Source: Squalus acanthias (Eukaryota). Taken from it: a stretch of 64,000 nt of DNA. A program made the position numbers and the translations under genes. Where the stretch lies: positions 68,138,001-68,202,000 of the forward strand of contig CM059430.1 in NCBI GenBank assembly GCA_030390025.1, written 5' to 3'. The stretch's first letter is position 1, and every line of letters begins with the position of its first letter. The notes under the pieces are model-generated. The model had not been told where the DNA came from, searched no databases, and was given only the letters and a program-made list of their open reading frames with translations. Below, piece after piece: positions 9,392 through 44,950 of this stretch.

Positions 9392-9500
9392 CTTTCAAAG
9401 CAGTTGATCCAGAAATGATCAGCAATGATTATCGTCAGCATCAAAATGACCAACACGCTCAATACCAAGCGAACAACCATAACTGTCTTGTCAAGTGAAA
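9392..9500 (-). CDS. Transmembrane exon with charged Arg (VSLDKTVMVVRLVLSVLVILMLTIIIADHFWINCFER); probable exon 4 of gene B
   Basis: Acceptor tttcttatttatttcctag, open in phase 1, donor AG|GTAAGA (read-through gives AGG TAA). Not in the ORF track. Assignment to gene B rather than only to the decayed duplicate is inferred. Confidence 0.8.
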
Positions 9501-9945
9501 CTAGGAAATAAATAAGAAACAGAAGTGAAAATCCGGCGGTTTATATAAAAGGCGGCTGAGCTGAAACTCGACTTTACTCTCCGACGCCAAATAGAAAAAT
9601 CGACCCCATTGTATTCCTGGTCCTACACCCGAACAATGATTGAGAATTTCATTTACAAAACCGTGAAGTTCTTTAGTTAAAAGTGTTATGAAGTGATTTT
9701 AATAGTGTTTTGCAACATGCACTTCTGAGAAAGGAAATAAATATATCCTGCCATCCGTGTGCAGCGTTATTTGGGACAATATCCGTATTTTAACGACATT
9801 AGAATTCCGAACAATCAAGCTGACATTGGCTGAGACCGGAAATATCAGATGGACTCGTCTTTTTTTCTCCGTAGAGATATCCTGACTCCGCATTTACACT
9901 ATAAATGTTCCTCTGGTGCTAAGCTAAAAAAAATTCCCACCGACG

Positions 9946-10747
9946 TGTAGGCTTCGCAAAATCCCCCAGAAACTCGAACAGAGCCCTAAAGGGAGTGATT
10001 TTTGGACTTTTCATACAAACGTGGGATGATGGGGCCTAAGTGAAGTGATTTGATGTAAAAACCTAAAGATCAGGGAAGAAAAAACCTGAGGAAACTGACT
10101 TTTTCTTTTAAATCTTACTGTTGGGAGAGACACCTTTCACAGACACAAGCTGCGAGGGGCATGGCCTGGCAGTGAACAGATCAAGCTGTCTGGGAATTGT
10201 TTACACTGCGAATCCTAACGAGGTGCAAGAGACAAAGCAAAAACTCACAAACACATTCAAATATGAATCCCATGGGGTTTCTCTGCTCTCTCCATGCTCC
10301 AGCAAAACCTACCACAAACCACGAGGAAGAAGGCCAGAAGACCAGCACGCAAGAAGAAACCAGAGCGACTGCCTCAGTGACCATCGGACACCTCGCAGCA
10401 ACAAGGGCCTTATGGAGTCTTTTTAAACAAAAGACACTAATATCCTGTCAAGGATTCGTTGGTGAGCATTATCCCAGATCTCCTGAAACCATTAACCGAG
10501 CCAGATAGTGGGATCTTTAAGAGGGATAAGGTTTTGTTTGATATATTGTCATTTCTCTCGCTTGTACCGTGTGCTCCCCAAATCTGTGTTTAAGTAATAA
10601 GTGTGTTTCAAGTTTGGTACCTTTTTCTTTTAATAAAGTAAAATTCTTTCATCAGAACCTGTTTACTGCAATTTTGTTCACAACCCCTAAATAAGTCCAA
10701 AGTCTAGGAACCGGAGGGGTGTGGGAGCGATTAAGATACCTCTTACA
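9946..10747 (+). mobile_element. Solo LTR (802 bp) with 4-bp TSD GACG
   Basis: Termini TGTAGG...CTTACA, GACG on both sides (9942-9945 and 10748-10751), internal AATAAA near 10632. The paralogous intron at ~14650-14680 lacks the insert. Confidence 0.8.
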
Positions 10748-10816
10748 GACGCTACATTGCAATGTAAATGCACACTTATTCAACTCTAATTATTTTTGAA
10801 GGTCTCGGCACATTAC

Positions 10817-11124
10817 CCATGTTAGAAACATCAACAATTAAGGGATTTTAGCTCGAGCCGTGAGTGTGAGGTGAGACACTTGACAAGTATAAACAGCTCC
10901 GCTCCGGAGGGGCTGCGTCTCCTTCTGAAGGCTGGAAATTTCATACAGTCCATTCATGTTCTACTTTGTGCTTTTCGCTATGCCGATCAAAATCTCAATT
11001 CCATCTTTATACCAAGTGAGGTTGAGAGTAGCCGGGTAAAACTGAACCGTTTTTCACACGAGATTCAGAGCATAGGAGTTTAATTCAGGTACTTCGGAGA
11101 AAATCTTCAGCTGAGTAGGCGGAA
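10817..11124 (-). pseudogene. Decayed duplicate: C1 pseudo-exon
   Basis: Highly similar to 14736-15044. Acceptor AG>GG, first Cys TGT>TGA, a further TAG, and net 1 nt shorter (frameshift near the 3' end). Confidence 0.92.
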
Positions 11125-11559
11125 CCGTAGGATAAAAACGGTTAAGACATAGCATTTGGGCTATTTTGTTCTTGCGTTTGCCAATTATCTTCTCTTCATT
11201 TGGAGCCTTTAAATGGGCTAGCATTAAAGTATCAGTGTTAAATGACTACCGCGAAATTGTATTCATTACATTAAAAAAATTAATCAAGAGAACTGCGCAT
11301 TTGAAGCGCAGCTTCTTTTGTGTTCGAGAAACTTCAACTGCATAACATAAATTCATATCAATATGAATTGACATAAATGCCTGTTCAAATGTCCCTTGTC
11401 TATTGTATTATTATAATTTGACAGTATTGTTAAAAACTTCAGTTGTTACAAATCCATTATAACTTTCAAAATTGGAATTGTGTTGCGTTTTCAAATAACA
11501 GTCATATTTGTCATGCAATTGTCGGTAAATATTCTGAACAAATATCAAATCTCTTACAA

Positions 11560-13434: not shown

Positions 13435-13468
13435 CAGAGATTCACTCAGAACTGAGCGTCAATAGCAA
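13435..13468 (-). pseudogene. Decayed duplicate: V exon reduced to 34 nt by internal deletion, with in-frame TGA
   Basis: Starts TTGCTATTGACGCTCAGTTC, identical to the gene B V exon start. CGA has become TGA, and the sequence then joins directly to the V-exon end TCTCTG|GTAAGTGAAACTG. Acceptor and donor are both intact. Confidence 0.85.
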
Positions 13469-13592: not shown

Positions 13593-13647
13593 CTGTGTAA
13601 ATAATCGCGAGGACCCATATGACCAACAGTACAGAGCATCCAGACAT
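13593..13647 (-). pseudogene. Decayed duplicate: leader exon MSGCSVLLVIWVLAIIYT with mutated donor
   Basis: 55-nt leader homologous to A and B. The phase-1 donor reads G|TTATCT instead of G|GT. Confidence 0.75.
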
Positions 13648-14735: not shown

Positions 14736-15044
14736 CTATTTTAGAAATCGGAACAATGAATCTCTCACTAGCTGGATCCGTCAGTGTCAGGTGAGACACT
14801 TGACAAGTATAAACAGTCCCGCTCCGGACGGGCTGTGTCTCCTTCAACAGGCTGGAAACTTCATACAGTCCGTTCATGTTCAAATTTGTACTTGTCTCTA
14901 TGCCGATCACAATCTCAATTCCATCTTTATACCAAGTGAGGTTGAGAGTCCCCGGATAAAACTCATCCGTTTTACACACGAGATTCAGAGCAGAGGAGTT
15001 TAATTCAGGTACTTTGGAGAAAATCGTCAGCGGAGTTGGCGGAA
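14736..15044 (-). CDS. Gene B exon 3: Ig C1-set domain
   Basis: Acceptor tttatttctacag, donor G|GTAACG, 309 nt. VPPTPL...LVC...FYP..L.LTWYKDG...NGLYEVSS.L...YTCQVSHLTL. Confidence 0.92.
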
Positions 15045-16560: not shown

Positions 16561-16881
16561 CGGAGACTTTGATCGTTGAGCCTGTTCCGTTTACAATCCT
16601 GCTTCCCAGGTTTCTCACTCCGCAGTAATAGACCCCAGAGTCCCACGCACTGATATTCAGGAGATGAAAGGAGGCTCCCCCTTGTTTAAAAAGGAGAAAT
16701 GTTTTCCTGTTGTCGGAGGCTGTTTGAAGAAATTTACTTTCGCCAAGTTTCCACCAATAAACACTCACATCAGAGTTATCTTGAAAAATGGGGAATGTGC
16801 AATAGAAGGTGATGTTTGAACCCACGAGCAAGCTCTTGCTTTCAGGAGCCTGGGAGACTCGGAACTGAGCGTCAATAGCAA
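16561..16881 (-). CDS. Gene B exon 2: Ig V-set domain with germline-joined J-like G strand
   Basis: Acceptor tttcctgacag, donor G|GTAAGT, 321 nt. Motifs VSQAP, TFYC, VYWWK, DSGVYYC and VNGTGSTIKV. About 45% identical to the gene A V domain by manual ungapped alignment. Confidence 0.93.
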
Positions 16882-16970: not shown

Positions 16971-17025
16971 CTGTGCACATAATCCCCAGGAGCCGCATGG
17001 ACTGAAGTACCCCGACTATAAACAT
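16971..17025 (-). CDS. Gene B (activating-type VJ-C1 IgSF receptor) exon 1: signal peptide MFIVGVLQSMRLLGIMCT
   Basis: ATG at 17025, 55 nt, donor G|GTATTT. An 89-nt intron separates it from the V exon. Homologous to the gene A leader (VLQ...LG.M.T). Confidence 0.85.
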
Positions 17026-17844
17026 GTTTAACGACGGGCATTTATCGCTTTTTGCGAGGAAGCACAAAGCTCTGGCGATAACCTGCGAGCAGATGACATC
17101 CGCCTGAACTGGCAGAGCCAATGAATGAGTTGATTTTAATGTGCGAATTGCGTGGGAGTAGCTGAACGCTCAATCAGACTTGGAAGCTCGTCACAATGTT
17201 AATAGTGTTAGTCAAAATCCAGACCACAGCGGGAAACTGGGCGCGGGATAAACGTGGTAGAAAATATCCTTCTGGAAATAGGAAGCTTGATGTTAGCTTC
17301 TTTACTTGATGTTAGCTCATCAATATATACAAATTGTCTATTACCTGAGATGAAGATTTATTTCAGATGCAGTGACATCTCTACGGCCTACCCCTGCAGC
17401 GTCGTTCGCAAATATCTCAGAAACAACAACCCAGAAAATACAGGAACCTCTAAGCAGGTCGCTCAACATCTGAGGAGAAATCACACGAGTTACCGTTCTG
17501 GGCATAACACTTCTTCAGAACTGGAAAAAAGAGCAAGATTTAAATAGCATCAGAGCAAAGGGAAAAAGGTGAAAACAAAATCGCACCAGAGAAACAGAAT
17601 ACATTGTCAGTGCTGTAATGTCCTGGAATAAAGTTTTAATGGACGGAATGATATTAATATTGAGTTCAAAGGAAAGGAAAGTCCGGCAAGGTTTAAAACG
17701 GACGGCTGATCCTCTATCACCCGTTTGTCATCTTGTGATCTCTCTCGATTTTCATTGCCATCCTTAGAGGTTTATAAAGGGCGGTTGATACCATATCACC
17801 CGCTTAATACTAACCCACAGTCAAAATTACATTTCATTAAAAGA

Positions 17845-20660
17845 TAGAATCATAGAATCATAGACTCGTACAGGAAAGGTAGAGGCCATTAGGCCCATCA
17901 TGCCTGTGCCGGTTCTTTTACAGAGTTATCCAATTAGTCCCACACTAATGTCACGTTCCTATAGCCACGCGACTGATTCCCCTTCAAGAATTTATCCAAT
18001 TACCCTTTGAATGTTATTTTTGAATCTACTGCCACCGTCCTTTCAGGCAGTGCATTAGAGATCATAAGAACCAGCTGCGTTGGAAAAAAATCTCATTGTT
18101 TCCCCTTTTATTCTTTTGCCAATTACCTTAAATCTGTTTCCTCTGGTTACCGACCCTCCTCTCAGTGGAAACCGTTTCTCCGAACTTACACTATCAAAAC
18201 TTCATGTAATTTTGAAAATCTCTGTTAAATCTACCCTTAACATACTCTACTATAAAGAGAACAATCCCAGGTTGTCTAGCCTCTCCGCATAACTGAAATC
18301 TCTCATCCCTGGTTCTATTCTAGTAAATCTCCTCTGCATCCTGGCCTAGGCTCTTACCTAAAGTGTGCTGATCAGAATAGCACACAGTACTCCAGCTAAG
18401 GCCTAACCAGTGATTTATAAAGTTTTAGCATAACGTCCTTGTTTTTGCATTCTATGCCTCTATTTATAAAGCCAAGGATCCCGTATGATTTTCTGAAAAG
18501 CCTCATCAACTCTTCCTGTCACCTGCAAAGATTTGTGTAAAGAAAAAGCAAAGACTTGCATTTATATAGCGCCGTTCACGACCACCCAACGTCCCAAAGC
18601 GTTTTACAGCCAATGAAGTACTTCTTGAAGAGTAGTCACTATTGTAATGTAGAAAACGCGTCAGCAACTTTACACACACCTAGCTCCGACAAACAGCAAT
18701 GTGATAATCTGTTGATTGAGGGATAAATATTGGCCAGGACACCAGGAATAACTCCCCTGCTCTTCTTCGAAATAGTGCCATAGAAACTTTTACGTCCACC
18801 TGAGAGAGCAGACAGGTGATCGGAAAGACCGCACCTCCGACAGTGCAGCACTCCCTCAGTAATATACTCGAGTGAGATTTTTGTGCTCAAGTGTCTGGAG
18901 TGGGACTTGAACCCGCAACCTTCGGACTCCACGGCGAAGGTGCTACCAGCTGAGCGACGCCTGACACTTGTGTACGAAAAACATAGGTGTCTCTCCTCCT
19001 GCACCCCATTTAAAATATTCTCATTTTGTTTATATTGCCTCTCCTCATTCGTCCTTCCAAAATGGATCACTTCACACTTCTCTGCATTTAACATTAATCT
19101 GCCATGGATCTGCTCATTTCGCCAGTCTGTCTATGTCCTCCTGAATTCTGCTACTATGCTCCCCACTGTGAAGTACATTTCCGACCTTCGTGTCATCTGC
19201 AAACTTGGAAATAATTCTCTGTCTACCCAAGACTAGGTCATTAATATATATCAAAATAAGCAGTGGTCCGAATAACGACCCCCTAGTGGGTATTATTGTA
19301 TATATCCCTCCAGTTCGAAAGGCCATATACACAACATTAACCACACTACCCTCATCAACCCTTCCTTTTATTTCATCAAAGAACTCAATCAAGTTTGACA
19401 CATTCGATTTTCCTTTAACAAATCCGTGTTGGCTGTCATGTATTAAACATATTTTCGAAGTGAGAAATAATTTCGGCCAAGTTTCTTTTCTCTAAAAGTT
19501 TCCCCAACTCTGACGTTAGTTTGACTGGCCTGCAGTTACTGGGTTTATTCCTCTCCCCTTTTTGAACAGGGGTGTAACATTTGTATCCCTCTAGTCCTTT
19601 GCCACCAGTCCCATTCGCAAGGCAGATTTAAAGATTGTGGCTATTTCCGCACTTACTTCCCCCAGCAACGTAGTATGCATCCCATCTGAATCGGCTGAAT
19701 TTTTTACTTTGAGCGGTGCCAATCATTTAATGGCTTCTCTTTAGCTATTTTTATACTACCTTCTTTCTGTACCCATCCTCATTTATTGTGACATTGGGAG
19801 GATCATCTTCTTTTGTGCAGCCAGATGCAAACTATTCATTTAGTACATTAGCCATGCCTTCGGCCTCCATAAGAAGTTCCCTTGTTCTGTTCCTAATCAG
19901 CCCCAACCTTCCTTTGACTTCCTTTTTAATATGTATATGTTTATAAACGACTTTAGTTTAGTTTTTTATGTTACCTGCTAATCTTTTCTCATAGACTTTC
20001 TTTGCCAGTCGTGTTTGCTTTCTCAGTTCTGCTTTGCACTTTTTGAATTCTGCTGGATTCTCTAATGTATAAAAGATTTGACATTTACCATAAGCGTCCT
20101 TTTCCGGTTTAATTGAAATCTCTATCTTTTTATTCATCTAGGGAGATCTAGCTTTGAATGCCCTTCGTGTCCCCATCAAGTACACAAACTATACCCTCTC
20201 TGAAGGCCTCGAATTTCTCATTTAACGTTTTCCTGCTAAGCTTAGATTCCAATCCATCTGGAACAGATTCCTTTTCAGCTCACGAAAATTAGTGCTCTTC
20301 CAGTTGAATATCTTGACCTTATTGTTCCTTGTTCCTTTCCCTAACTACTCTACACCTAATGATATTGTGATCACAGTTTCCCCAAAAATCTCCCCCTGAA
20401 ACTTACTTCACTTGCCCCATTTCACTTCCCAGAACGAGATCCAACACTGCTTCCTTCATATTAAGGATGGAAACACACTGATCAAGAAAGTTATCCTGTA
20501 CAAATGTCAGGAATGCATCCGCTCATTGCATATTACTCCGTTTTTTGCTCAGTCTATTTTAGGATAACTGAATTATCCCATTATCATTACTCTATTGTTT
20601 TTTCAACTTTCTAAATTAGCTGGGAAATTTGCTCCTCCATCTTCTTCCCGGATCACTTCT
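17845..20660 (-). mobile_element. Degenerate CR1 LINE interrupted by a Deu-SINE
   Basis: NLIEFFDE, ISKFADDTK and NAEKCEVIHFG motifs; (CTATGATT)n tail at ~17845. Confidence 0.88.
18540..18965 (-). mobile_element. Deu-domain SINE (SacSINE1-like); further copies at ~45590-46045 and ~47545-47965
   Basis: tRNA-like head (GGTTCAAGTCCC), conserved core and L2-type tail GCGCTATATAAATGCAAGTCTTT. Three mutually similar copies in the window. Family name from recall. Confidence 0.7.
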
Positions 20661-22837
20661 GAAATGAGCAGAAATCGACTGTTCTTATGTTTCCAGAAAA
20701 TAAGAGCGTTTTTGAATTTCTATGCAGGAATCCGAGTCTCCGCTGCCTCACTCCAGCTTTTGGTAATCCCACCCCTTTTACCATTGCATTATTGGCTGTC
20801 CCTTTATCCACCTTGGCCCCACGTTCCCTCCTTAAAGCGACTGCCTGTTCACCTCTCTCTCCCTCTTTAATACCCTAATTAAAATCTTCCTCTTTGACAA
20901 ATCTTTTGGTTACACTCCCTATTACATTTTTCTATCCAGCGGCCATTTTTGAATACCTCTCTGTGGAGACCATTGGGGCGTTTTTCTAAGTTAATGGCAT
21001 TGTTTGAACGCAATTTGCTGTCGTAAATAACAAACAACTGGACAAAGTCATTGCACCAGAACTGCTTGTTACCAGGATGAGTGTGGATAAGACGTTCATG
21101 AAGGGCTATTGCTCAATAACTACCATTTCACAATTAAGAAACCGTGGTCTATGTTTATATATCCGTTGCAGCTTCAAACTTATCAACAGCCCTGACTTTT
21201 CAAACTATTCACATCTGTAATTATAGCTCAGTTTCAGTGTAACCACTTCTACAAATAGGAAACTTTGCATGTGTGCGCTTGAATGATAAATATTCTGATA
21301 ACTAACATCTCTTTATTGTATACAATGGTGCGTGAGAACTGTGTGCATAACTTTGCAAGGTAAAAGACTGTTTGTGAATATGTCCGTGCCGATTAACACA
21401 TCTGTTGGATACATTTTAATGAGTTAATTGATCAACACTGCCAACCAGCAAAATATGTTATTTGTGCGACTAATAATATACAATGCGTGTTTCCATCAGA
21501 TATAATCGATTTTTTGTATGCTAATTTGTGTTGGCTGCAAGCGACAATTTTCAGTTTTCTGAAAACCTTTGTGAGAGCGTTACTTCCATAAATTTTCAGT
21601 ACCGAGGACTTATACTGAAATATTCTAGCATGGATCCCGCGGCCATAGAAATGGGGTCAATTTTGTGGGCAAGGTCAGATCTGGAAGTGATAGTAGGTTA
21701 GGAGGAAGGATCAGGTGGATGTCTCGCTGAGAGCTGAGAGGAGAAGACAGCACACTCTACAGCTGAGAACCGATAGAATCATACTGGGAATTGTAAATCC
21801 AAAAAACGGTTCGGGTGGGGGCGGTGGAAGGTTAAAGTATAAAAAATGTGAATCCCGACCACAATCCGCCTCCAACACGCCCATTTCCGGATTCAACGGA
21901 GGCGGGACGTGGGACTTTAAATTATAACGAGGCTGAAGCCTTTGATTTAATATGCTGTGCAGGTTTAACTGTGTCCCGACGGGGAGCCGGCCCTCGGGAT
22001 TCCCTACAGCTGCAAGGAGGTGAAGACAGCCTCGGGGTGCAATCCTTAAGGGCTGCAAGTAGCAGAAGTGCTTCCTCCTGGACCACAAGGTTCGCCCCCT
22101 CCCCCACCCATCAGTTCCCCCTCTATTATCTGGGACCTCACGGATTGGAACCCCCTCGGGTCGGGGATCAGAACCACCCGTGTTCCGACCCCCAACCTCG
22201 GGTCGTGGATTGGATTCTCCGGGATTAGACCCCAAACGAAGGTCGGGACTCACACCTCCCTGGTCCTGCGACCGCCTGTACAGCGTTCCCGACCGCCTGG
22301 AAACCTTGCTGTGTAGTTAAAACTTCTGGCGGGAAGGAACTTCAAAATTCCGACATAGAATCAGGCAATCATACAGTACAGAAGGAAGACATTCTGCCTA
22401 TCTTGTCTGTGCCAGCTATTTGAACGCGCTATCCAATTATTACCACTCCCATGGTCTTGCAACATAGTGCTGCAAATGTTGTAATTTAAGTAGAGATCTG
22501 CTTCCCTTTTGAAATTTACTATTGAATCTGTTTATACCAGCCTTTCAGGCTGTGTCTTCCAGATCATAACAACTCGGGTGTAACAATATATCTGCCCATC
22601 TGCACCCTGGATTTTTTGCCAATTATCTTAAATCTGTGTCCTGTTGCTCCGACCATCCTGCCAGTGGAAACACTTTGGCCGCAGTTTTTCAATTGGAGAG
22701 AGTGCGGGTTTGCGAGTGGGTTAGCAGTTAATAGTGCAGAAATTGACAGCGTGTCGGGAAGCTGCCTTCCAGCCGCTAATTTTAGCCTTTTACTCTGGTG
22801 CGTTTCTCAGCGCGCCAGAGACACGCTCGGGAGAGGC

Positions 22838-23625
22838 AGGCAGGTAACATTCGCGCCGCAGAAGTGCCAGGCAATGACTTTCTCCAACAAGCGAGAGGCC
22901 AACCACATCCCCATGACATTCAACGGCATTACCTTTGCCGAATCCCCCACCATCAACATCCTGGGGGTCACCATTGACCAGAAACTTAACTGGAGCAGCA
23001 ACATAAATACTGCGGCAACAAGAGCAGGTCAGAGGCTAGGTATTCTGCGGTGAGTGTTTCACCTCCTGACTCCCCAAAGCCTTTCCACCATCTACAAGGC
23101 ACAAGTGAGGAGTGTGATGGAATATTATCCACTTTTCTGAATGAGTGCAGCTGAAGCAACACTCAAGAAGCTCGACACCATCCAGGACAAAGCAGCCCGC
23201 TTGATTGGCACCCAATCCACCACCTTAAACATTCATTCCCTCCACCACTAGCGTACCGTGGCTGCAGTGTGTACCCTCTACAAGATGCTCTGCAGCAACG
23301 TCGCCAAGGCTTCTTCGGCAGCACCTCCCAAACCACTTCCACCTAGAAGGACAAATGCAGCACGCGCATGAGAACACCACCACCTCAAGTTCCCCTCCAA
23401 GTCACACACAATCCTGACTAAGATGTATATTGCCGATCCTTCATCGTCGGTGGGTCAAAATCCTGGAACTCCCTTCCAAACAGCACTGTGGGAGTACCCT
23501 CACCACACGGACTGCAGCGGTTCAAGTAGGCGGCTCTTCCACCACCTTCTCAAGGTCATCTAGGGATGGGCAATAAATGCTGCCCGTGCCAGCGAGGCCC
23601 AGATCCCATGAACGAACAAACAAAA
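22838..23625 (+). mobile_element. 3' fragment of the second LINE family inserted in the Harbinger left arm
   Basis: QVTFAPQKCQAMT...ILGVTIDQKLNW and 3' end GGGCAATAAATGCTG...GCCAGCGA..CCCA.ATCCCATGAACGAA. Confidence 0.88.
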
Positions 23626-23740
23626 CTCATTAAAATATTTCAGAAGTGGTTAACGCGCTATTAACAGGTTTTTAAACTGGTGTAACAGCTTTCACTGTGC
23701 ACGGGATTCATGGGCTTCCTGAACCTTGTCTATGAATGGA

Positions 23741-23955
23741 AGTGAGAAGTCGCACAATACCAGGTTATAGTCCAACATTTTTATTTGAAATCACAAGCTT
23801 TGCGAGCTGCTGCTCCTTCGTCAGGTGAAGTCAGCAGCAGCAGGAGCAGCAGCTCCGAAAGCTTGTGATTTCAAATAAAACTGTTGGACTATAACCTGGT
23901 GTTGTGCGACTTCTCACTTTTGTCCACCCCAGTCCAACACCGGCATCTCCGCAAT
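23741..23955. mobile_element. Penelope-derived inverted pseudo-LTR pair (hairpin)
   Basis: ~77-bp arms GTGAGAAGTCGCACAA.ACCAGGTTATAGTCCAACA...CAAGCTTT in inverted orientation. Same family as 36462-37195. Confidence 0.75.
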
Positions 23956-27751: not shown

Positions 27752-27769
27752 TGGTGTCAGAAGTGGAAT
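27752..27769 (+). promoter_or_regulatory. Primer binding site TGGTGTCAGAAGTGGAAT (tRNA-Leu type)
   Basis: Lies 1 nt after the 5' LTR end. Near-complementary to the vertebrate tRNA-Leu 3' end ATCCCACTTCTGACACCA (recalled, not searched). Confidence 0.75.
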
Positions 27770-28242
27770 CACATAGCGGGAGTCACATGGACCTCGGCAT
27801 TGTGAGAGCCCGGAAGTCTTGGTCGACCGTGCATGATCGACGCTTAGACTGGGTATGGAACTCTCTGAGAGAGTTAGAGGAAGCGTGTCAAATAATTGAA
27901 AACAGATATACAATGGCGCTGGCATATCACCGGGAACACTTGATAGATAGCCTGACAGAGAATAACAGCGCGCCTGGGGCGACGGAAATTCTAAGAATTC
28001 TAGAGGAGTGTGCTGGGAACTATGATTGCATTCTTGACAGACTTTCTGAGGACGTCCAGAAACCCAAGCTTAAGCCGAAAAAAGGCCGAGATAAGTTAGC
28101 CTACGAAGCACACTTCTGCGCCTTGCAGTTAAACAAAATAAATAAAAAATTAAAAGAACAGGCAGTTATGCTACATAACGAAAGCGAAGGTTAGCAGGAA
28201 AGCATTGCCGTCCTACACAATCAGTTGCAGTGGGAACAGATA

Positions 28243-28558
28243 GGGGCAACACGGTGGCACTGTTGCCTCACAGCGCCAGGGACCCGGGTTCGAATCCGGC
28301 CTCGGGTGACTGTCTGTGTGGAGTTTGCACATTCTCCCCGTGTCTGCGTGGGTTTCCTCCGGGTGCTCCGGTTTCCTCCCACAGTCTAACGATGTGCGGG
28401 TTAGGTTGATTTGGCTATGATAAATTGACCCTTAGTGTTAGGGGGGGATTAAATACGTGGGGTTACGGGGATAGGGTGGGATATGTGTCGGTGCAGGCTC
28501 GATGGGCCGAAATGGCCTCTATCTGCACTGTGGGGATTCTGTGATTCTGTGATTCTGT
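28243..28558 (+). mobile_element. HE1-type V-SINE inserted in gag
   Basis: tRNA-derived head with B box GGTTCGAATCC, V-domain core GTGGAGTTTGCACATTCTCCCCGTGTCTGCGTGGGTTTCCTCCGGGTGCTCCGGTTTCCTCCCACA, CR1-type tail ending (GATTCTGT)n. Confidence 0.88.
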
Positions 28559-31500: not shown

Positions 31501-34500
31501 CATTGTCCAAACCTGTCAGTGCAACAATTATGCTATTTGGACTTGGGATAAGTTCGAACTGATAAAATGGACTCGGGCACAGTATGTCTGCAGCATTGCC
31601 GCTTGAAATGTATCTACTTGGTCGATGTGCTAATGATTGTAAGACTGAATCATAACTTGTAACTGTAATAATTGTGGTTTGTAGGTAACAGAGCGTGGGA
31701 AAAGCCAACACGAGTCCAGTATGAGGTACTTTGGGTCGTGCCTCCTGTGTCACTACTACCTGTCTAACAGGGCCTGTCCCATTAATAGCCACAGTTTCTG
31801 CTTTACACCACATCAACCAACACGTTTTACAAAGGATCAAAACCTATGCTCAAGTGAAACTGACATTAAATGAGATAATTAAGTAGGAGCTGTAAAATTA
31901 TGTGGACAATTGGGTACGGCATTCCTCTGTTGTCTGAGGGCTTTTGTAAGCTCGTGATGCGACTGAACTCCTCCCTAAAGCATTTTTATGTTTTGGAGAA
32001 ATACAACTCGAGAATAGATATTGAAATTGACAGCATAGGGGATGATTCACACTGGTGGGCTATTGAACTTAATATATCAGCACCCCCTTAAGGGTCGTAT
32101 TATTTCACATGCTCTGGTAGTTCTCCAAATTGTAATGATAGTGTATTTGATATATATAACCCGTGCAGTAAGACTTTGATGCATAAGCCAATCGTGTACT
32201 CATGCCTATGACTAACCAGCACTAACAAAGAGAAGACCCGAAGCAATGTAGGGGAGACCCCAGGCGGGGTCAGATCAGGAAAGATAGAAGAAACAGAAGA
32301 TAGCCCAGGCGGGGCTGAATTGGAACACCGGAATCGTGAATGGAACCTTTGTGAAGGGTAGGAGGTTGCTACTCTCCGTCAAAAGAATGGATTGTAAGAA
32401 AGGGGAAAATCTTCATTTCTGAGTCTCCCTACTAACGAACTCACAAATTGAGGGAGCAATAAGAACTAGCTAGATTAGTCAAGAGACGATTTTGAAAAGT
32501 CAATAAGTATATTTCATTCCCAAAGTGGGGAATTGTAAGAAATCGTGAATTGGAAGAAATTGTGAATCATAAGAAATAATGGCTTTATGAAACAAATATG
32601 CTCATCTGAGCTGAGCAGCCAGGATAAGCTGCTGATACAGCTGTTGTACAAACAGCTGAGGTCATTGCAAGGTCATAGCACAAAACAGGCCTTCGAGTGG
32701 GCAGAACTAGGGCTGATAAAGGGTTCAATAAGATAAACAAGCTGTCTGGGAGAAAGTGTAAGAGTTAAGCAAAGAGATGGTCTCCATAGACTGGGAGGGA
32801 TGTGCTACAGGTCCCTATTCCTCCGTAAATGGACAATTGAATGGGTAAAGTTGATTAAAACAAGTGATTGGCGTGAGGTATCCAAAAGCCCCTAAAAGAA
32901 GATATATAAATGGGCAGCCAAGAGGAAAATGCAGGCAAAAAGGTTGGATAGCTTCCCCGAGGTGGATGCATGCTTGCTTCGGCTTAACACTCTGGTCAAG
33001 TTTAAACTCTGAGGTAGACTCCATGCTAGCTTCGGCTTAACACCTCCGCGAGCTAGGGAGATGAACAAAGAGGAAGAGACCGTTGGCGCAAGCTGCATGG
33101 ATCCAGGACTACCGTTCTGCCTCAACCTCCGTCGGTCCGTCCCTCCATCCGTTCCGGGGCCTGTAAACCGTTCTCATCTGTTACGGGTTGTATGTCTACT
33201 ATGTCTATCCTGAGTTAACTATATTTGAACTGCCGCTCTTAAGACCCTTTGGATAATCTGTGTGTGACATGTGATCCGAAATCTTACAATTTCCACAAAA
33301 CTGCTGAACAGTCAACTCCATATGCTGACCCTGGTGCTAGCTGAGATTTTGAACGGTTCCCTCGCCTCACGCAATGCCCTCCTCACTTTGATAACTGCAT
33401 TCACCCCTCTTCAAAGAATACAACCTTGCTCCCTCTGCAGTTGCACAATAAGGCTTCATTTACAACCTTCCTTTCCCTCCAATCTCCTGAACAAGTTATA
33501 CCTCCCATATTCATGCCAATCAGTCCCGCAAACTCATGTTTTGACCATTCCAATCAGTGTTCATCACTGCCACAGCACTGAAACCACCCGAATCAAAGTT
33601 ATAAGGACATCCTCTGTGATGGTGACCATGGTCCACTGTCCCTCCTCATCCTTCTCTACTTCTCTGTTACATTTAACATGTTTGACGACACCATCTTCAT
33701 CCAACGCATAACCAACATTGTTCAACTTTGAGCGGGAACATCCTCGCCTGGTTTGGCAGTTTCCAAAATAATTGAAACCGTATAACGCAGAATATGGGGA
33801 AGACTCTGTAAGTGGAAGAAGTTCTGAGTACTGTTGTTTATTGTAGGTTATGGCTGGCTCTACTTATCGTAGCTGCCCTTCTATGGGAACGTAATTTTGC
33901 GATCGGAATAACGGTGAGTCTAACAGCACCCAGTGTTATTATGGAGTAAATCGGCAGCAACTTCCGGCATCCACACATGCAAAGTTAAACACTGAATTCC
34001 GGATGTTGCTGTCTGAGTTGCTCTGTTTCCTCAACACGCTTCGCTATACCAGTACCTCACCGATAGATTCGATATTAAACTACATGAAGTCATGAACTTG
34101 CGGTCCTTACTAACTAGTTAGCCACTACATACGCCAGAAAAAGATTGGGCTGGTGCATTCAGCTGTAAATTATTTTTTATTAATGTCGTGCTAAGTCTTA
34201 CTTACTGCCAAACAACCTCTATGGCCCTAAAATGTGTTTTTACAAGCGTGGCCTCTCATTCCTGCAGAATTTAATTATTGTTGGACATTTTAAAAATATC
34301 TACCTTTTTACTTTTTCCTTCTGTCTCTTTTATCTCACTCTCAAACCCATCTTTCATCCCCTCTCTTTATTTCACTGTTTGTATATGATTTTTACTTTGA
34401 ATTAAATATTCCAATTCAGACTTTCTGCTTCAGATTCTGCGTGCCTCGGTGAGGATTTTTCAACCTGATTGGGGGAAGAAACACGCTGTTGCTTTCCCTG

Positions 34501-35864
34501 CGCAATCACGCCACAGATCCCCTGTAGAGGGCAGCACACTGAAAAGGATCTCAAGTAACCTTAAGTTGCCTCTAAAAATCACATAAAAAGTCTTTGTACA
34601 GCTGTAACCGCAATGAATGGCGAGCTCCCTTCTTTCCCCTCTTACCACAATATCCGGGACATTGTCTTTCTATACTTTATTGTTGGGAATGGGTAGATAT
34701 TTTATGCATTGAGGTCACTTGTGACCATCTTCCATTGTATCTATTCCTCTCACTTACGGGCCCTGCGATGGTCATTGCCAAACGCACCTCTCTCCATCAC
34801 CACCAGCGCCCCACCCACACCCCCGCCGCAGGCTGTCCATGATCAACAGATGCATCAAGGAAACTCGGGTCTCTTTATCCTCTCTCACATGTGCCGAAGA
34901 TTAGTTTTCTAAGAATCTTTGTGCCTTTACACGTATCTGTTTATGTGGTGTCTGTGCCACTGCCGTTTGAAGCATCTGCAAGCCATTAAATTCCGCAACA
35001 GGTTACCCCGCCCCCACCCCCAAAGCTTTATCGACCTTGGTCACTGAATAACAGCGACGACGCTTCACAGTATGGGTGAAACATGGGAAAGATCGGCATT
35101 CATGATGATATTTTGATAGTACAATCACAGACCATTGATAGGATAGTCGTTCCTAGTCTAGCAGCTACTGTTACCAATCAACAAATGAAAATGTGGCACA
35201 GAAAAACGTCATAAACGGCCGTATTCAACGCGACACATGGTTTCTGTTACGTTTGCATCAGCCTGCCAATCCATCACGGGAGATCTGGTGATAACTCAAT
35301 AAAATTATGGGCGGCAGTGTTTTCAATCTATCAGAATTTCCTACAGCATTGCCCGAAACATCTCTCATGTCTGATCTGAAATGGTGAAGGACACTGAGGG
35401 AGAACTTTGGCGCAATCCTCACAGTCTGCAGCCGTATTTTCGCCAGACGATCAATTGAAACCTAGCACAAGCGAAGTAACGGCCAGGATCCGCCAATCTC
35501 GGCAGATACCGCCGGTCTCCCGTCAGGGAACTCTGCCGAAATTCTATGCGCAGAGCACTGAAATATGGAATATTCCAGGACGAGTGCATGACCTTTTTAT
35601 CCAACTGTCCTTAGAGTAGGAGGTCCCGCGGCGAGGCCGCTCCATCTGTCTGTGCAGAAACTTAAAATTGAGAACTGGCGCCTCTTTTGGTGCATGCAGA
35701 AATGTTTCAGCAAATCTAACCAAAGGGACAAAAATACATGTTCTGAACACATAGACAGGATGTCACGCTTCATCGTGACGTATTCAATTCTCCGGCTCTT
35801 CAACTATCTTACAAACCATCAGCCAGTTCACGGTCTGTCGCTCCGAGTGATCAATTGGTTCAGA

Positions 35865-35919
35865 ATGTCGGCGAGTGCTGTACTTCAGTGCCTCTCTGTT
35901 CTGGGATTCATGTTCACAG
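35865..35919 (+). CDS. Gene A (inhibitory VJ-C1 IgSF receptor) exon 1: signal peptide MSASAVLQCLSVLGFMFT-G
   Basis: ATG at 35865, 18 mostly hydrophobic codons plus 1 nt, then phase-1 donor G|GTACAT. Same 55-nt length as, and similar sequence to, the gene B leader. Confidence 0.85.
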
Positions 35920-36091: not shown

Positions 36092-36412
36092 GCTCCTGCG
36101 AAACCTCGGTCAAAGTGAATCAGCTCCCTGAAAGCCCGAGCGGAATCAAGGGTACAAGCGTTTCCTTTCATTGCTCGATTCCCTTCTTTCAAGACGGACC
36201 AGAGGTGAAGGTATACTGGTGGAAACAGGGTGATAATAAATATCTAAGCACAGGACCTGATGACAGAAAAGTAACTGGTTCCAAAACTAAATTCAGCGGC
36301 TTCCTTCAGATAATCAATATAAGTGTCCAGGACTCGGGAGTATATTACTGCACTGTCGCCCATCGAGGCCGAATAGTTGGAAACGGAACGGGATCCAATT
36401 TAACTGTCTGTG
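36092..36412 (+). CDS. Gene A exon 2: Ig V-set domain with germline-joined J-like G strand
   Basis: Acceptor ttttcttttccgatag, donor G|GTAAGT, phase 1/1, 321 nt. Motifs VNQLP, SFHC, VYWWK, DSGVYYC and GNGTGSNLTV. Confidence 0.93.
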
Positions 36413-38137: not shown

Positions 38138-38449
38138 TTCCGCCAACTCCACTGAAAATTGTCTCTCAGGAATCTGAAAAGGAATCTACTGCGTCTCTGA
38201 CTCTACTGTGCACAACATCTCCCTTTTACCCGCAGAATATCAGCTTCACTTGGTATAAGGATGGAACCAAAATTACAACAAGGATAAATAACATTAATCA
38301 ACCAAACACCGATGGACTATATGAAGCTTCCAGCCGGTTGGAAGAGACGAAAGCTGTCCAGACGGGGACCGTTTATACCTGCATGGTGTCTCACAGTACC
38401 CTCAAAATTTCAGCCACAGCCACTCACATTGTCACCTACCAGAACACAG
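38138..38449 (+). CDS. Gene A exon 3: Ig C1-set domain
   Basis: Acceptor tttttctag, donor G|GTAATA, 312 nt, phase 1/1. C1 hallmarks LLC...FYP..I.FTWYKDG...NTDGLY...S.L...YTCMVSHSTL. Confidence 0.93.
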
Positions 38450-40580: not shown

Positions 40581-40691
40581 GTGATGAGATCTTCCATTGC
40601 TTGCGGATTTCTGCAAGTGCAGGGGTCGGGTTGGTAGTCCTGGTGCTGGTTGTCATCATTGGGAAGCAATGTGTCTCAAAGAAAAATAAAG
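40581..40691 (+). CDS. Gene A exon 4: stalk and transmembrane (GDEIFHCLRISASAGVGLVVLVLVVIIGKQCVSKKNK)
   Basis: Acceptor tcttgaag, donor G|GTAAGA, 111 nt in phase. Hydrophobic run followed by basic stop-transfer residues. Confidence 0.88.
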
Positions 40692-41319: not shown

Positions 41320-41363
41320 GAGCGCAGAACGATGGCGAAAGATCCGACTATCGCGAACAGCCG
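41320..41363 (+). CDS. Gene A exon 5: short cytoplasmic exon (GAQNDGERSDYREQP)
   Basis: Acceptor ttcattcattaccag, donor CCG|GTATGT. The 44 nt convert phase 1 to phase 0, exactly what puts the ITIM exon in frame. Confidence 0.7.
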
Positions 41364-41749
41364 GTATGTGTGCATGATTCATTCTAATATATTTCAGATA
41401 TTAACATATACATAACAGTAGTAATCTATTTAAAGCAATAATTTGTCACGTTATAATCTATTGCTCTCAAGATTCATACAAAAATAGCGCAGATTGAATT
41501 CAGCGCTTATGGGAAAGATCTTCGTCAATAGGTCAGAGGCAGCTGAATTGTAAATGTCATCTGCTGATGGCGAATAAACATATTGCTTAAAAGTTACCAT
41601 CAACCGTATTTAATAATAAAGAAGTTGTTTTTTGCCTCCTGGACACAGCGGACAGTATGTTGGCGGTAGTTCATAATGCTGTGCCCATTAACTAACACTG
41701 AACTTAATCCAGAGTACGCGAGTACAAATCCTATCATTGTAGTTTGAGA

Positions 41750-42475
41750 TTTTAAGAACATCTTTCCTCAGATGAGGCGACCAAAACTGTACACAGTACT
41801 CGAGGTGTGGTCTCACCAGTGCCCTGTACAGCTGCAGCAAGGTATCCCTGTTCCTGTATTCCAACCCTTTTGCTATGAAGGCCAGCATACCGTTTGCCTT
41901 CTTGACCGCCTGTTGCACCTGCATGCTCGCCTTCAGTGACTGGTGTACAAGAACACCCAGGTCTCTCTGTACTTCCCCCTCTCCCAATTTATTGCCATTT
42001 AAATAATAATTTGCCCTCCCGTTCCTGCACCCAAGGTGGATAACTTCGCACTTGTCCACATTATAGTGCATCTGCCATTTATCCGCCCAATCACCCAGTC
42101 TGTCCAAATCGCTCTGGAGCTTCCTGGTCTCCTCCTCTGAGCCCACCCCCCCTCCTAGTTTAGTGTCGTCTGCAAATTTGGAAATGCTGCATTCGACTCC
42201 CTGATCCAGGTCATTAATATAAATTGTGAACAGCTGGGGACCCAGGACAGATCCCTGTGGTACCCCACTTGTTACTGCCTGCCATTCAGAAAATGAGCCG
42301 TTTATTCCAACTCTCTGTTTTCTATCTGACAGCCAGTTCTCTATCCACGTCAATACTTTCCCCTTTATCCCATGAGCTTCAATTTTCCATGCTAATCTTT
42401 TATGTGGGACCTTATCGAAGGCCTTTTGGAAGTCCAGGTACACCACATCTACTGGCTCTCCCCCATCTATTTTAC
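41750..42475 (-). mobile_element. Young CR1 RT fragment in gene A intron 5
   Basis: Open frame with YLDFQKAFDKVPH, GVPQGSVLGP and KFADDTK. Confidence 0.93.
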
Positions 42476-44782
42476 CAGAATTCAGGTTTCAAAATCTGTA
42501 AATAAATGATGTTATCTGAAGCTGTGGGATTGTCTTAAAACCCCAACTGGTTCACTAACATCAGTCAGGGAATGAAACCTGCCATTCTTAACCGGTCTGC
42601 ACCGTATGTGACTCCAGTCCACACCAAGGTGCGTGACTCTCAATTTCCCCCTGAAGTCTCCTCTGAATCTCACCACCAGCAACTTCTGAGGGAAAACAGG
42701 GCTCGGCAATAAACGCCGACCTTGCCAGCGATGCCCACATCTCGAGAATTAATACAAATTCCGGCACAATATCACAGGCTGGCGGTGCCAGTTTAGCGAT
42801 TTGTTGTTCCCGGAATTTTGGGTGAATTTGCGGAAATGTTAAGAAGACGTGGAGACAGGTGACGATTAAGCGGCATTCCCTTCAGTCGCCTCATTCTCCC
42901 GTCATAATATCCATCTGAATTTGGAAAACCTCCAATGTCAACGCCCAACCGTCACCTCCTTGGGCGGAATTTGCTGCTTCACCGCACAGGCCGGGAGACC
43001 AAGCAAGCACGGAGATGCTTATCGGAAAATTGAGGGTTATTTTCCCGCCATCTCCCACGTATTGAATCAATGGACAGAAAAGAGTTGGCATTAATTCGAT
43101 GTGTTCCAATATATACCGCCTGTTGCCTGTGATTACCGATCCCGGGAAGCGTCCTGCGATAATTCCAGCCCATCAAAAGAGTTATTCCAACCAAATCTGA
43201 TTCTTTCAGTGCATATGTTTTTCCTGATATCTGTTCGACATTTGTTTTCCATTTGTATCCCTAGTTCTAATTCATCTCCGTGATTGAGTCATCAGGGTCT
43301 AAATTAACGTGAAAGACAGATAGACATTGATGTAGATAGAAATATATAAATATAGATATATATATAGTTATCGATATAGATATAGATATTGTGACATTGT
43401 GGATGAATTAATAGCTGGACATAAGATTCTGTGTGCAGTCCAGAAGCTCAATGACAAGCTTTAATATAATCTCTTGTAGTCCATGTTCTGATCCTTGATT
43501 CCAGAATTCTATTCGTTGTTTACTTTTCTGGACATTGAAAGTGACCTGACTGCTGTTAACCCCAGACCCCTTTCTGTCTCATTGTGCTAATTCAATTCCA
43601 TTCATTGTATAACTACGATACACATTTACCATTATGCCTAAAGCTCAATTTTATAAAGGAGTTAAATGGTTTTACTATTTTTTTGGTGCAACGAAAGTGT
43701 AATTTCAAGTATGGAAACCTTGCCAGATGGAGGTTATTTCAACTAGACTACTCCTATCAATCGACTGCAAGGATGAACTTTGATCCCTTATTTTTCTTTA
43801 CTTTCTTAAAATGTAAATTTCGATGGATTTCCGTAACTTCGGCGGGACACCCGTGGAAGTCCCAGACAAACAACGTAAAGGGCGCGTTCAACCTATTACA
43901 CTGTTTCTATGGGGCTTCTGGTGGTCACCCAGCAAAGTGAGACCAGGAGACCGGTTGTAGCTCCGCGCATTTTGGGGGTAGATTTTCGTCTTTACCGTCT
44001 GGGCGCTAAGCAATGCATGGGTGCAGCGCAGAAAGAGAAATCTGGTGGGGAGGATCGCCCGTCCCGAGGGAATTTCTTTGCATTCGTTTCAATGGTAGGA
44101 CAATGCGCGGGTTCTGGTGCCAGCAGCGGCTCCGCAAGATTTTGCAATCCATGCTGAGCCCTGACGATGCTTCAGGTCTAGGCGGTAAAGAAGAACCCTC
44201 CTTTCACCCTCCCCCAAACTGTTCGAATATTTGTGATAATGCGACGGATTCCGCCTGCTGGGCACTGACGGCGCGGACACGGAGCACAAACAAGGAGGTT
44301 GTGGCAGCAGTGACTGATATTCCATCCGTTCATTTAATTGATGGACTCTGGACCTGCTATTTTCGGGCCTGCTTGCATCGTTCTGCGCAGGGAGCGCCCA
44401 AACGTGGTATCTGCCCTAACACCATAACAAGATATATTTTTGCCGTTCCTTCCATGCAGGGAGCTGCTGATGTGATGGCGCCTTATGCCGCATTAGATCA
44501 GAACAAGTCCGGAAAGGTCCAAGACCAAAGCATCAATAGAGGACAGTGTATGCACAGGTAAGGGCTGAGGAACAGAACAAAGAGTCACAGATTACCTGTA
44601 ATTAACGGGCATGCAGGATAGTGTAAGCAAGAACTTGAATTGTACTATGGTAATCTTTTATATTTAATTTAAATTTAAATCCTCGCTAATTCTGCGAGGC
44701 TCCAGCTATTCCAATGAATGTGCTAAAACATTAAATAACTGCAATATCGAAGTAATTATATTCCCAATAATTGATTTCACAG

Positions 44783-44950
44783 ACCAAGCAACGGGTGCCT
44801 GATAATAAGCTGACCTACGCTGCTCTAGACATGACAGGCTTCAAGAAAACATCAAAGCCTAATTTTAAGGATAAGAGCACGGAGTATGCTCAGCTACAGA
44901 TGAAAAATCAAAGAACAGACGTTATTTACACGGAACGAAAAGCCAAGTAA
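44783..44950 (+). CDS. Gene A exon 6: ITIM/ITSM-like cytoplasmic exon (TKQRVPDNKLTYAALDMTGFKKTSKPNFKDKSTEYAQLQMKNQRTDVIYTERKAK*)
   Basis: Acceptor tgatttcacag, 56 open codons to TAA at 44948-44950. LTYAAL fits the ITIM consensus (I/L/V/S)xYxx(L/V); TEYAQL is ITSM-like. Not in the ORF track. Confidence 0.88.
   Translation, partial: TKQRVPDNKLTYAALDMTGFKKTSKPNFKDKSTEYAQLQMKNQRTDVIYTERKAK

Follow-up and report, generated by a model that had tools for sequence, protein, structure and literature searches.

Described receptors with related architecture

SIRP receptors have one V-set domain and, behind it, a pair of C1-set domains; they comprise an inhibitory member with ITIM-type tyrosines and an activating member with a basic transmembrane (TM) residue and a short tail (PMC12975943). 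Non-rearranging VJ-C1 genes of elasmobranchs are described in PMC12227049, namely the secreted UrIg with three C1 domains and UrIg2 with nine to eleven, and the legend of its Fig. 2 postulates a two-domain VJ-C1 gene from which UrIg and UrIg2 would have started and which, by way of these two, would have led to Ig and TCR. In that paper the term ITIM has 0 occurrences and no ITIM or Arg-TM partner of UrIg or UrIg2 is described. Other receptors with a joined VJ are CD79, NITR, CD8 and PRARP (PMC11599192).

The two genes found in the window (the whole 64-kb stretch of DNA that was analysed) share with SIRP a V domain at the N-terminus that carries a J-like G-x-G motif and precedes C1-set sequence, as well as the occurrence of an ITIM inhibitory form and a basic-TM form with a short tail, but each has one C1 domain where SIRP has two. 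With UrIg and UrIg2 they have in common the split leader, the single-exon VJ, C1-type domains and the restriction to cartilaginous fish; they differ in that a single C1 exon is followed by a TM exon and in that the family has two signalling modules. The G-x-G bulge of the V domain is shared with CD79, NITR, CD8 and PRARP. NITR exist in ITIM or charged-TM forms, PRARP was reportedly described by Fu et al. in 2019, and we know of none among these four with one VJ and one C1. NKp30 (NCR3), the shark version of which is said to have been treated by Kinlein et al. in 2021, resembles the window genes in its non-rearranging VJ-type V domain but is not known to have a C domain, whereas both window genes carry a C1-set exon (E = 2.2e-16 and 7.5e-13). 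The one V plus one C1 found in each gene thus bears out an earlier sequence-only reading, which had set the architecture apart from SIRP (V-C1-C1) and NKp30 (V only). Ig light chains, including the germline-joined shark clusters, have the same V-C1 layout, split leader and phase-1 exons, but V and J of the window genes lie in one exon that ends at a splice donor and the presence of TM and cytoplasmic exons sets these genes outside the light chains. The chondrichthyan family that has this architecture is represented by RefSeq models and has no curated name.

Two intact receptor genes in head-to-head orientation

The window contains two intact shark receptor genes located head to head, each with one V and one C1. 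What the sequence-only reading had observed is real, and its interpretation was partly supported. Both genes probably represent intact copies within an extensive VJ-C1 multigene family so far confined to chondrichthyans, with the plus-strand gene as the ITIM form and the minus-strand gene as the Arg-TM form. All 11 exons of the two genes have AG/GT sites, fitting phases and no internal stops, and the summed exon lengths give coding sequences of 1011 nt (plus) and 822 nt (minus). The common exon design noticed earlier, with a 55-nt leader, a 321-nt VJ exon and a C1 exon of 312 nt (plus) or 309 nt (minus), was recovered with the same sizes and phases, and the VJ and C1 exons of both genes run from phase 1 to phase 1 between AG acceptors and GT donors. 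In both genes the Pfam V-set and C1-set matches exceed the curated cut-offs, in agreement with an ectodomain of a single-exon VJ-type V and one C1-set domain. The spacer between the diverging start codons (17026..35864, assigned to neither strand), described previously as about 19 kb and filled with repeats, measures 18.8 kb (18,839 bp from start codon to start codon) and contains reverse-transcriptase-like fragments; no further family exons were found in it by tblastn. No gene other than family members and no Ig light-chain C exon was found in the window, in which tblastn detected three C1-like exons including a pseudo-copy.

The plus-strand gene spans 35865-44950 and encodes a product of 336 aa in six exons, in the order leader, VJ, C1, TM, a 44-nt exon and an ITIM tail. 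The leader exon (35865..35919, 55 nt, phase 0 to 1) begins with an ATG at 35865 and shares 78% identity (18 aa) with the P0003 leader from Heterodontus francisci. The VJ exon (36092..36412, 321 nt, phase 1 to 1, Pfam V-set E = 3.4e-11) ends in the J-like G-x-G motif GNGTGSNLTV, and its V is 76-78% identical to H. francisci family proteins. For the C1-set exon (38138..38449, 312 nt, phase 1 to 1, Pfam C1-set E = 2.2e-16) the identity was 72% over 124 aa with P0015 from Heptranchias and up to 75% with H. francisci members. The stalk and TM exon (40581..40691, 111 nt, phase 1 to 1) encodes an inhibitory-type TM that aligns with the TM of homologues bearing an ITIM. The 44-nt cytoplasmic exon (41320..41363, phase 1 to 0, AG/GT sites; 61% identity to P0015 over 18 aa in tblastn) was included because the last exon would otherwise be out of frame, and with it the length of 336 aa proposed from the sequence alone was reached. 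The last exon (44783..44950), which shows 75-76% identity with the P0003 and P0015 tails, contains both tyrosine motifs that had been reported for this tail, LTYAAL (44810-44827), which is an ITIM, and TEYAQL (44879-44896), which is ITSM/ITIM-like and has Thr at position -2, and is not a strict ITIM, followed by the stop codon; both motifs are on the plus strand. Each exon of this gene, the 44-nt and ITIM exons among them, has its match in P0003, P0004 and P0015.

Five exons make up the minus-strand gene, which encodes 273 aa. It consists of a leader exon (16971..17025, 55 nt), a VJ exon (16561..16881, 321 nt, Pfam V-set E = 3.3e-7), a C1-set exon (14736..15044, 309 nt, Pfam C1-set E = 7.5e-13), a TM exon (9392..9500, 109 nt, phase 1 to 2) and a last exon (5446..5473, 28 nt, with an AG acceptor and 8 codons plus stop). 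The last exon lies outside the range covered by the sequence-only reading and was located by homology to H. francisci XP_067905015 (P0087), which matches the gene exon by exon with identities of 85% in V, 73-75% in C1, 80% at the TM end (15 aa) and 73% at the C-terminus (11 aa); in its C1-TM junction the H. francisci model departs in some details from the best pair of splice sites in the minus gene. The TM Arg and the short tail without Tyr that had been read for this gene were both recovered; the Arg is in the outer part of the TM, and Asp-His is at its inner end.

A putative receptor family of cartilaginous fish

On sequence grounds the two genes belong to a large, unnamed family of sharks, rays and chimaeras, so far found in chondrichthyans only. 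The approximately 74 family proteins with a species name in the databases are all chondrichthyan (20 species, including Callorhinchus), and representatives with conserved TM and tail exons peculiar to the family are present in holocephalans, sharks and batoids. As type I membrane receptors, members possess a split leader, a single non-rearranging VJ-type V exon that closes with a G-x-G J motif, and one C1-set domain; homologues of 260-370 aa each have one C1 domain, and in both window genes the leader, VJ, C1 and TM are present and V and C1 conform to the family consensus. Family membership of C1 domains was set at a threshold of 60 bits; against the window C1 exons family C1 domains scored at least 62 bits and every non-family domain at most 41. 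The RefSeq labels are inconsistent (SIRP-alpha-like, Ig-lambda-like, tapasin-related-like and NCR3LG1-like), the commonest being 'tyrosine-protein phosphatase non-receptor type substrate 1-like', and many members are labelled 'immunoglobulin lambda-1 light chain-like'. A literature search, for which key subscription papers were out of reach, found no description of the family.

When 103 family proteins were classified (4 rows being relabelled by eye), 38 were ITIM forms, 10 were Arg-TM rows (from 6 genes), 1 was a Gln variant, 22 had short tails, 3 had long tails without ITIM and 29 had no TM, classes of tail that are partly artefacts since automatic models or isoforms account for many of the database rows. 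In a TM alignment of 8 sequences an Arg column was present in 7/8 and Asp/Glu-His followed 17 residues later in 7/8, and this Arg-x17-Asp/Glu-His type is conserved in six shark species. The ITIM forms and this TM form recur in several sublineages. The presence of both forms among family proteins upholds the suggestion of a cartilaginous-fish family with both types of signalling; the further suggestion that automated annotation could miss the pairing is not supported, given that RefSeq models of other species include ITIM tails and Arg-TM exons, though under inconsistent names.

The signalling, cell type and ligand of both receptors are entirely inferred, with ITIM receptors and charged-TM receptors, e.g. 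SIRP-alpha and SIRP-beta, as the models. By analogy with the former, the plus-gene product would upon ligand engagement become phosphorylated on Tyr and recruit SHP-1/SHP-2, which would dampen activation. By analogy with the latter, the minus-gene product would activate through pairing of its TM Arg to an acidic residue in an ITAM adaptor; we guess that this adaptor might be of FcR-gamma or CD3-zeta type because the Arg is in the outer part of the TM.

Relationship between the two genes

The two genes had been taken for paired receptors. Judged by sequence, the family seems to fall in the class of paired activating/inhibitory Ig-like receptors, and ITIM and Arg-TM forms do pair at the family level, but the two window genes are no usual pair. 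They are only 42% identical in V and 49-51% in C1 and are placed in different deep halves of the V tree and of the C1 tree, and are therefore neighbours rather than a recent pair. The nearest ITIM form to the minus gene is not the neighbouring gene but a Mustelus protein (69% in V, 64% in C1), and in both the V tree (SH-aLRT 99) and the C1 tree (SH-aLRT 91) the minus gene shares a group with the Arg-TM protein P0087 and the ITIM protein P0146 from Mustelus. Arg-TM rows adjoin ITIM rows in several subclades of both trees, with 4 changes for 4 Arg-TM rows in the V tree, at least 2 of them forced by well-supported branches, and 6 changes for 6 rows in the C1 tree, at least 3 of them forced likewise. 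The C1 domains of P0052 (Arg-TM) and P0086 (ITIM) are 90% identical. Both signalling modules are found on several ectodomain lineages, and the two neighbours represent different old sublineages.

Alternative explanations and origin of the family

The family could be regarded as SIRP, with nothing new apart from the domain count, a possibility that we consider rather unlikely in spite of several similarities. When PDB was compared with the family profile, SIRP ranked directly behind UrIg2 among the non-antibody V-C1 matches if total scores were taken, and ahead of UrIg2 for the V-C1 unit (64.8 bits for human SIRP-alpha, 2wng, with 45.3 for its third domain, versus 51.4 bits for UrIg2); the Ig lambda V-C unit, however, scores equally high (65.8 bits). 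With the V-only profile, the best 60 matches included lambda, TCR V and amphioxus VJ-C2, whereas SIRP V was absent; NKp30 is likewise missing from the 60 top-scoring PDB matches to the V domain. The ESM Atlas puts P0004 nearest to SIRP-alpha-like clusters (0.97, 0.96), with an NCR3-like cluster at 0.93, and the commonest RefSeq label likewise points to SIRP. The best non-family single C1 for the plus-gene C1 was that of a lungfish SIRP-beta-1-like protein (37.4 bits), but its profile-profile identity is 19%, and the gap between family and non-family scores against the window C1 exons (62 versus 41 bits) also argues against this reading. An ITIM tail and a basic TM residue are present in both families, but the Arg of the window family is near the outer end of the TM, while SIRP-beta has a Lys for DAP12, and highly homologous ectodomains of inhibitory and activating members, as in SIRP, are not seen in the two window genes. 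SIRP moreover has two C1 domains to the family's one, and the analysis yielded no evidence of orthology to SIRP or of CD47 binding.

A second alternative concerns the minus gene, which might be a decaying locus whose V-C1 and distant TM exons are left from two tandem genes and are no longer joined, or which yields only a secreted V-C1. Within its 5.2-kb intron between C1 and TM there is indeed, on the same strand, a second, decayed copy of the leader, V and C1 exons. The leader-like remnant (13594..13647) has TT in place of the donor GT, the V remnant (13435..13468) has collapsed to 34 nt with AG and GT kept and is interrupted, on entry in phase 1, by a TGA in frame, and the pseudo-C1 exon (10847..11122) has two in-frame stops and GG in place of the acceptor AG. 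The decayed V region is 90% identical to 16914-16857 over 58 nt; the pseudo-C1 is 78% identical to the live C1 at the aa level, within a duplication of 557 nt that is 82.6% identical. Splicing of the minus gene must thus cross 5.2 kb with a 34-nt mini-exon that has intact splice sites and an in-frame stop, and read-through at the C1 donor ends after 14 codons. The rows without TM (29/103) and the RNA data also fit with decay: the C1 exon of the minus gene was not found in any RNA run searched, and comparison of four runs with the window yielded nothing but the repeat at 9945-10700 and a single contig of 202 nt within the C1 exon, with no splice joints. On the other hand, all five exons of the minus gene are open with consensus splice sites, the pseudo-C1 acceptor and the pseudo-leader donor are lost and most decoys are therefore disarmed, and the TM and last exons have conserved counterparts in the H. 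francisci model, which connects V-C1 to them. An intact Arg-TM gene is preferred and decay is considered unlikely.

With both genes taken as intact family members, a bolder idea, which we put forward as improbable, is that the family may be the surviving membrane-bound form of the VJ-C1 starting gene of PMC12227049, wired to ITIM and ITAM-adaptor signalling and kept and expanded in all cartilaginous fish, with SIRP possibly its derivative. If true, the family would show the signalling mode of a pre-RAG antigen-receptor-like chain. Least likely of all is that the family originated secondarily when germline-joined clusters of Ig light chains acquired TM and signalling exons, which would make it a derivative of rearranging antigen receptors and not a relative of their precursor: the best full-length PDB matches of V are lambda light chains (about 30 bits) and the lambda V-C score and RefSeq labels given above agree with it, but light chains resemble the family weakly and no more than SIRP does, the light-chain C exon is absent from the window, and holocephalans, sharks and batoids all have the family with its own TM and tail exons.

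The plus gene also carries a disabled optional tail exon (44460..44557, plus strand, 98 nt versus 99 in Heptranchias), in which a frameshift divides the tblastn match into two segments read in different frames and a TAG stands in frame where homologues carry Glu; its counterpart in relatives contains two further Tyr motifs.

Structure of the two VJ-C1 genes

The sequence-only reading had described two VJ-C1 genes in the window, one with a tail containing LTYAAL and TEYAQL and one with an Arg in the transmembrane (TM) segment, and this observation was confirmed and extended by exon delimitation, Pfam searches and motif comparison. The gene with the ITIM tail (the plus gene) starts at 35865 on the + strand with a 55-nt leader exon (35865-35919), followed by a V exon (36092-36412, 321 nt; Pfam V-set, E = 3.4e-11), a C1 exon (38138-38449, 312 nt; C1-set, E = 2.2e-16), a stalk/TM exon (40581-40691, 111 nt), a small exon (41320-41363, 44 nt) and a last exon (44783-44950, 168 nt) that contains both tyrosine motifs. 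The second gene (the minus gene) starts at 17025 on the - strand and consists of a leader exon (17025-16971, 55 nt), a V exon (16881-16561, 321 nt; V-set, E = 3.3e-7), a C1 exon (15044-14736, 309 nt; C1-set, E = 7.5e-13), a TM exon (9500-9392, 109 nt) whose outer part contains the Arg and whose inner end carries Asp-His, and a last exon (5473-5446, 28 nt), with which the tail is short and without Tyr. This last exon lies 3.9 kb past the start coordinate of the earlier reading and was identified because the C-terminus of the Heterodontus francisci protein XP_067905015 (P0087) matches there.

All exons of both genes have AG acceptors and GT donors, compatible phases and no internal stop, and the window contains no N and no masked letters. 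Each exon was translated and searched singly and only the exon lengths were summed, giving 1011 nt (336 aa) for the plus gene and 822 nt (273 aa) for the minus gene, in agreement with the product sizes proposed earlier. C1-set was the best Pfam family for both C1 exons, and the TM and tail exons of the two genes gave no Pfam match. The V exons end in GNGTGSNLTV (plus gene) and NGTGSTIKV (minus gene), both of which agree with the J consensus given in PMC11599192 in its G-x-G portion. As a single exon, ending at a splice donor, holds V and J without a break, neither gene rearranges. In the alignment of 22 family members from which our family profile was built, the consensus residue before the G-x-G bulge is Asn, forming an N-G-T sequon, whereas antigen receptors have Phe or Trp at this place (PMC11599192). 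If glycosylated, the sequon would argue against an antibody-like V-V pairing.

An optional exon of the plus gene (44460-44557) is 98 nt long, compared with 99 nt in Heptranchias, and has a TAG where relatives have Glu; in the relatives its counterpart encodes two additional Tyr motifs. The 336-aa form results when this exon is skipped, and corresponds to the 335-aa H. francisci protein P0004. Additional cysteines of the plus gene lie close to the N-terminus of the mature protein, at the final V-exon codon (36092-36412; Thr, Trp or Leu in relatives) and in the stalk that precedes the TM segment (40581-40691); they may be sites of interchain disulfides. The intron between its 44-nt exon and the tail exons holds a reverse-transcriptase fragment on the - strand (41688-42446; RVT_1, E = 4.2e-22).

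Between the C1 and TM exons of the minus gene there is a decayed duplicate of leader, V and C1 on the same strand. Its leader-like remnant (13647-13594) has the donor GT changed to TT, its V remnant (13468-13435) has shrunk to 34 nt with AG and GT kept and an in-frame TGA, and its C1 copy (11122-10847) carries two stops in frame and has GG in place of the acceptor AG. The live C1 exon of the minus gene must therefore splice across 5.2 kb to reach the TM exon.

When sequencing runs were searched with the C1 exon of the minus gene, no RNA run matched, and reads of four runs compared with window positions 9200-15199 showed no joints at exon borders. These reads covered a repeat at 9945-10700 and formed one 202-nt contig in the C1 exon with 9 differences, and nothing else in that interval. 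Support for the splice junctions therefore comes from splice-site consensus, exon phase and the models of homologues. The repeat, which lies in the C1-TM intron, is of high copy number, with contigs from all four runs, summed depths from about 100 to 1100 and many variants. With 18.8 kb between the two start codons, a bidirectional promoter was rejected.

Probable pairing of inhibitory- and activating-type forms in the family

Both genes belong to a family of chondrichthyan receptors with leader, VJ, C1 and TM segments. The earlier proposal that the two window genes form a pair proved overstated, since they share only 42% identity in V and 49-51% in C1 and fall into separate lineages. The V tree contained 60 rows (the two window exons and 58 distinct segments from a set of 67) after segments shorter than 85 residues had been left out and identical ones merged. 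In this tree the minus gene grouped with P0087, which has the TM Arg, and with the Mustelus ITIM protein P0146 (SH-aLRT 99), and the plus gene was placed in the opposite half, in a 14-row clade (support 97) of H. francisci, other sharks and batoids. The C1 tree (86 rows) was consistent with the V tree (support 91 and 95). As the trees are based on about 105 columns and a quick search, their deep forks are weak. On these comparisons, the two window genes are members of separate old sublineages.

The Arg-TM label changed four times for four rows in the V tree and six times for six rows in the C1 tree, and well-supported branches forced at least two and at least three of these changes, respectively. 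Clustering of the ITIM label on the trees was not above that of shuffled labels. The ITIM form closest to the minus gene is P0146 (69% identity in V, 64% in C1), and the C1 domains of an Arg-TM protein (P0052) and an ITIM protein (P0086) are 90% identical. These patterns point to a pairing of inhibitory and activating types that is real at the level of the family, with exchange of TM/tail exons between neighbours as the probable route.

Putative signalling modules

Family proteins (n = 103) were sorted by TM/tail type, with four rows reassigned by eye. In 38/103 rows a single conserved TM type is followed by an ITIM-type tail; the Arg-TM type was found in 10/103, which represent six genes, from H. 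francisci, Carcharodon, S. canicula, S. torazame, Chiloscyllium punctatum and Heptranchias; the remaining rows have a short tail or no TM, and some of these are surely partial models or isoforms. Among the 103 classified proteins the Arg-TM type was found in sharks only. One Heptranchias protein has Gln in place of the TM Arg, and in some short-tail forms from batoids an Arg is found at the edge of the TM. When the TM exon of the minus gene was aligned with seven proteins of the Arg-TM kind, Arg was present in 7/8 rows, as was Asp/Glu-His 17 residues further on. The sequences show the domain layout, the motifs and intact reading frames, and both TM/tail modules are conserved across species; the sequence-only reading was right about the architecture and the signalling types.

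In the ITIM form, phosphorylation of the Tyr residues would be expected to recruit SH2 phosphatases, and the Arg-TM form would depend on an ITAM adaptor bearing a TM Asp. With its outer Arg and inner acidic residue, the Arg-TM form would resemble receptors coupled to FcR-gamma or CD3-zeta more closely than DAP12-coupled ones.

Size, range and annotation of the family

A search with the V-containing ORF gave one relative, and a search with that protein gave 18 proteins including itself. The C1 exon, searched against 1.84 billion representatives, matched 912 proteins at E ≤ 0.001 and 16 at E ≤ 1e-30. Its best 150 matches included many single-C1 proteins (200-420 aa, 43-65% identity) and also long proteins with several C1 domains, for which the score is summed over domains. 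With the 22-member profile 42 proteins were obtained, 41 chondrichthyan by species name and one without a name, from a search that scored only the 8000 candidates with the most shared words and thus does not imply absence outside chondrichthyans. The species-named members (n = 74, named rows only, with about 30 further rows lacking a species name) represent 20 species, of which 12 are sharks, 7 are batoids and one is Callorhinchus milii. In each species checked, family members share one large record.

The sequence-only reading had suggested that automated annotation could miss the pairing, which went too far given that the family is present in RefSeq. There its members carry no fewer than eight automatic, mutually unrelated names (SIRP-alpha-like, Ig lambda-1 light chain-like, tapasin-related-like, NCR3LG1-like, MHC class II beta-like, CD276 homologue, PD-L1-like and uncharacterized), and keyword searches therefore miss it. 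Three models of 413-493 aa (P0009, P0172 and P0020) contain two V domains or two V-C1 units and may be longer family forms or tandem genes fused by the predictor. Residues 1 to about 125 of the RefSeq model P0087 match reverse-transcriptase-like stretches of the window at no fewer than seven sites, and the true leader of the protein begins near residue 150; the model is probably a fusion with a transposon fragment. In the main texts of non-subscription papers that were searched, no chondrichthyan VJ-C1 family with ITIM and Arg-TM forms was described. The family thus seems undescribed there, though genes of this kind might be listed in Table S1 or the supplementary figures of PMC12227049.

Relation to known receptor systems

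Single exons gave generic matches only against PDB sequences: the V exon of the plus gene matched lambda V at about 34 bits, titin scores were sums, and the C1 exons matched Ig, MHC class II beta-2, UrIg2 and SIRP domains. Per unit, the family profile scored 65.8 bits against lambda V-C, 64.8 against SIRP-alpha V-C1 (45.3 for its third domain) and 51.4 against UrIg2 V-C1 (30.5 and 37.7 for further domains). A V-only profile matched V domains of lambda, of TCR and of amphioxus VJ-C2 at no more than 31 bits, and neither SIRP nor NKp30 was among its best 60 matches. Among non-family proteins, the single C1 domain that scored highest with the C1 of the plus gene was that of a lungfish SIRP-beta-1-like protein (37.4 bits, 19% profile-profile identity); family C1 domains scored at least 62 bits against the C1 exons of the window, with the threshold set at 60. 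In the ESM Atlas, the nearest clusters to P0004 were SIRP-alpha-like (0.97 and 0.96), followed by kappa-like, CD33 and NCR3-like ones. Because of these PDB, profile, C1-domain and Atlas comparisons the family is regarded as distinct, at about equal distance from SIRP and from Ig/UrIg chains.

PRARP was weighed as a family of identical architecture; it is not known to have a C1 domain. Homology to the SIRP-alpha tail was not counted as evidence, since ITIM-plus-TxYxx motifs occur in a wide range of inhibitory receptors and the sole Pfam match, to SIT, was below threshold (E = 0.035). By domain count the family differs from SIRP (as defined in PMC12975943), UrIg, UrIg2 and NKp30. According to PMC12227049, UrIg is a secreted VJ with three C1 domains and UrIg2 a VJ with nine to eleven C1 domains and a TM, and a two-domain VJ-C1 precursor is postulated in its Fig. 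2 legend; the terms 'ITIM' and 'SIRP' were absent in a term search of this source. NKp30, PRARP and UrIg are cited as non-rearranging VJ genes in PMC10751288. We placed the present family among the paired Ig-like receptors, of a SIRP/VJ-C1 type.

No living lineage with Ig, TCR and MHC is older than the cartilaginous fish, and non-rearranging VJ-C1 genes are the current candidate relatives of the gene split by the RAG transposon. The family is far larger than UrIg or UrIg2, its VJ-C1 layout is the simplest, and it extends over sharks, rays and a chimaera. Given that inhibitory and activating forms exist, the family probably serves these animals as a major innate receptor system, and a curated description would close a gap among SIRP, NKp30, UrIg and the antigen receptors.

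Other features of the window

Two ORFs in the spacer between the genes (28788-29555, 255 aa, and 27712-28194, 160 aa, both on the + strand) had no match in Pfam, and GC content rises to about 0.50 across 22-30 kb. A near-complete LINE on the - strand (51456-54065) has three consecutive ORFs of 189, 469 and 197 aa; the last gave no Pfam match, and the first two matched an endonuclease domain (Exo_endo_phos_2, E = 5.5e-9) and reverse transcriptase (RVT_1, E = 1.3e-31), respectively.
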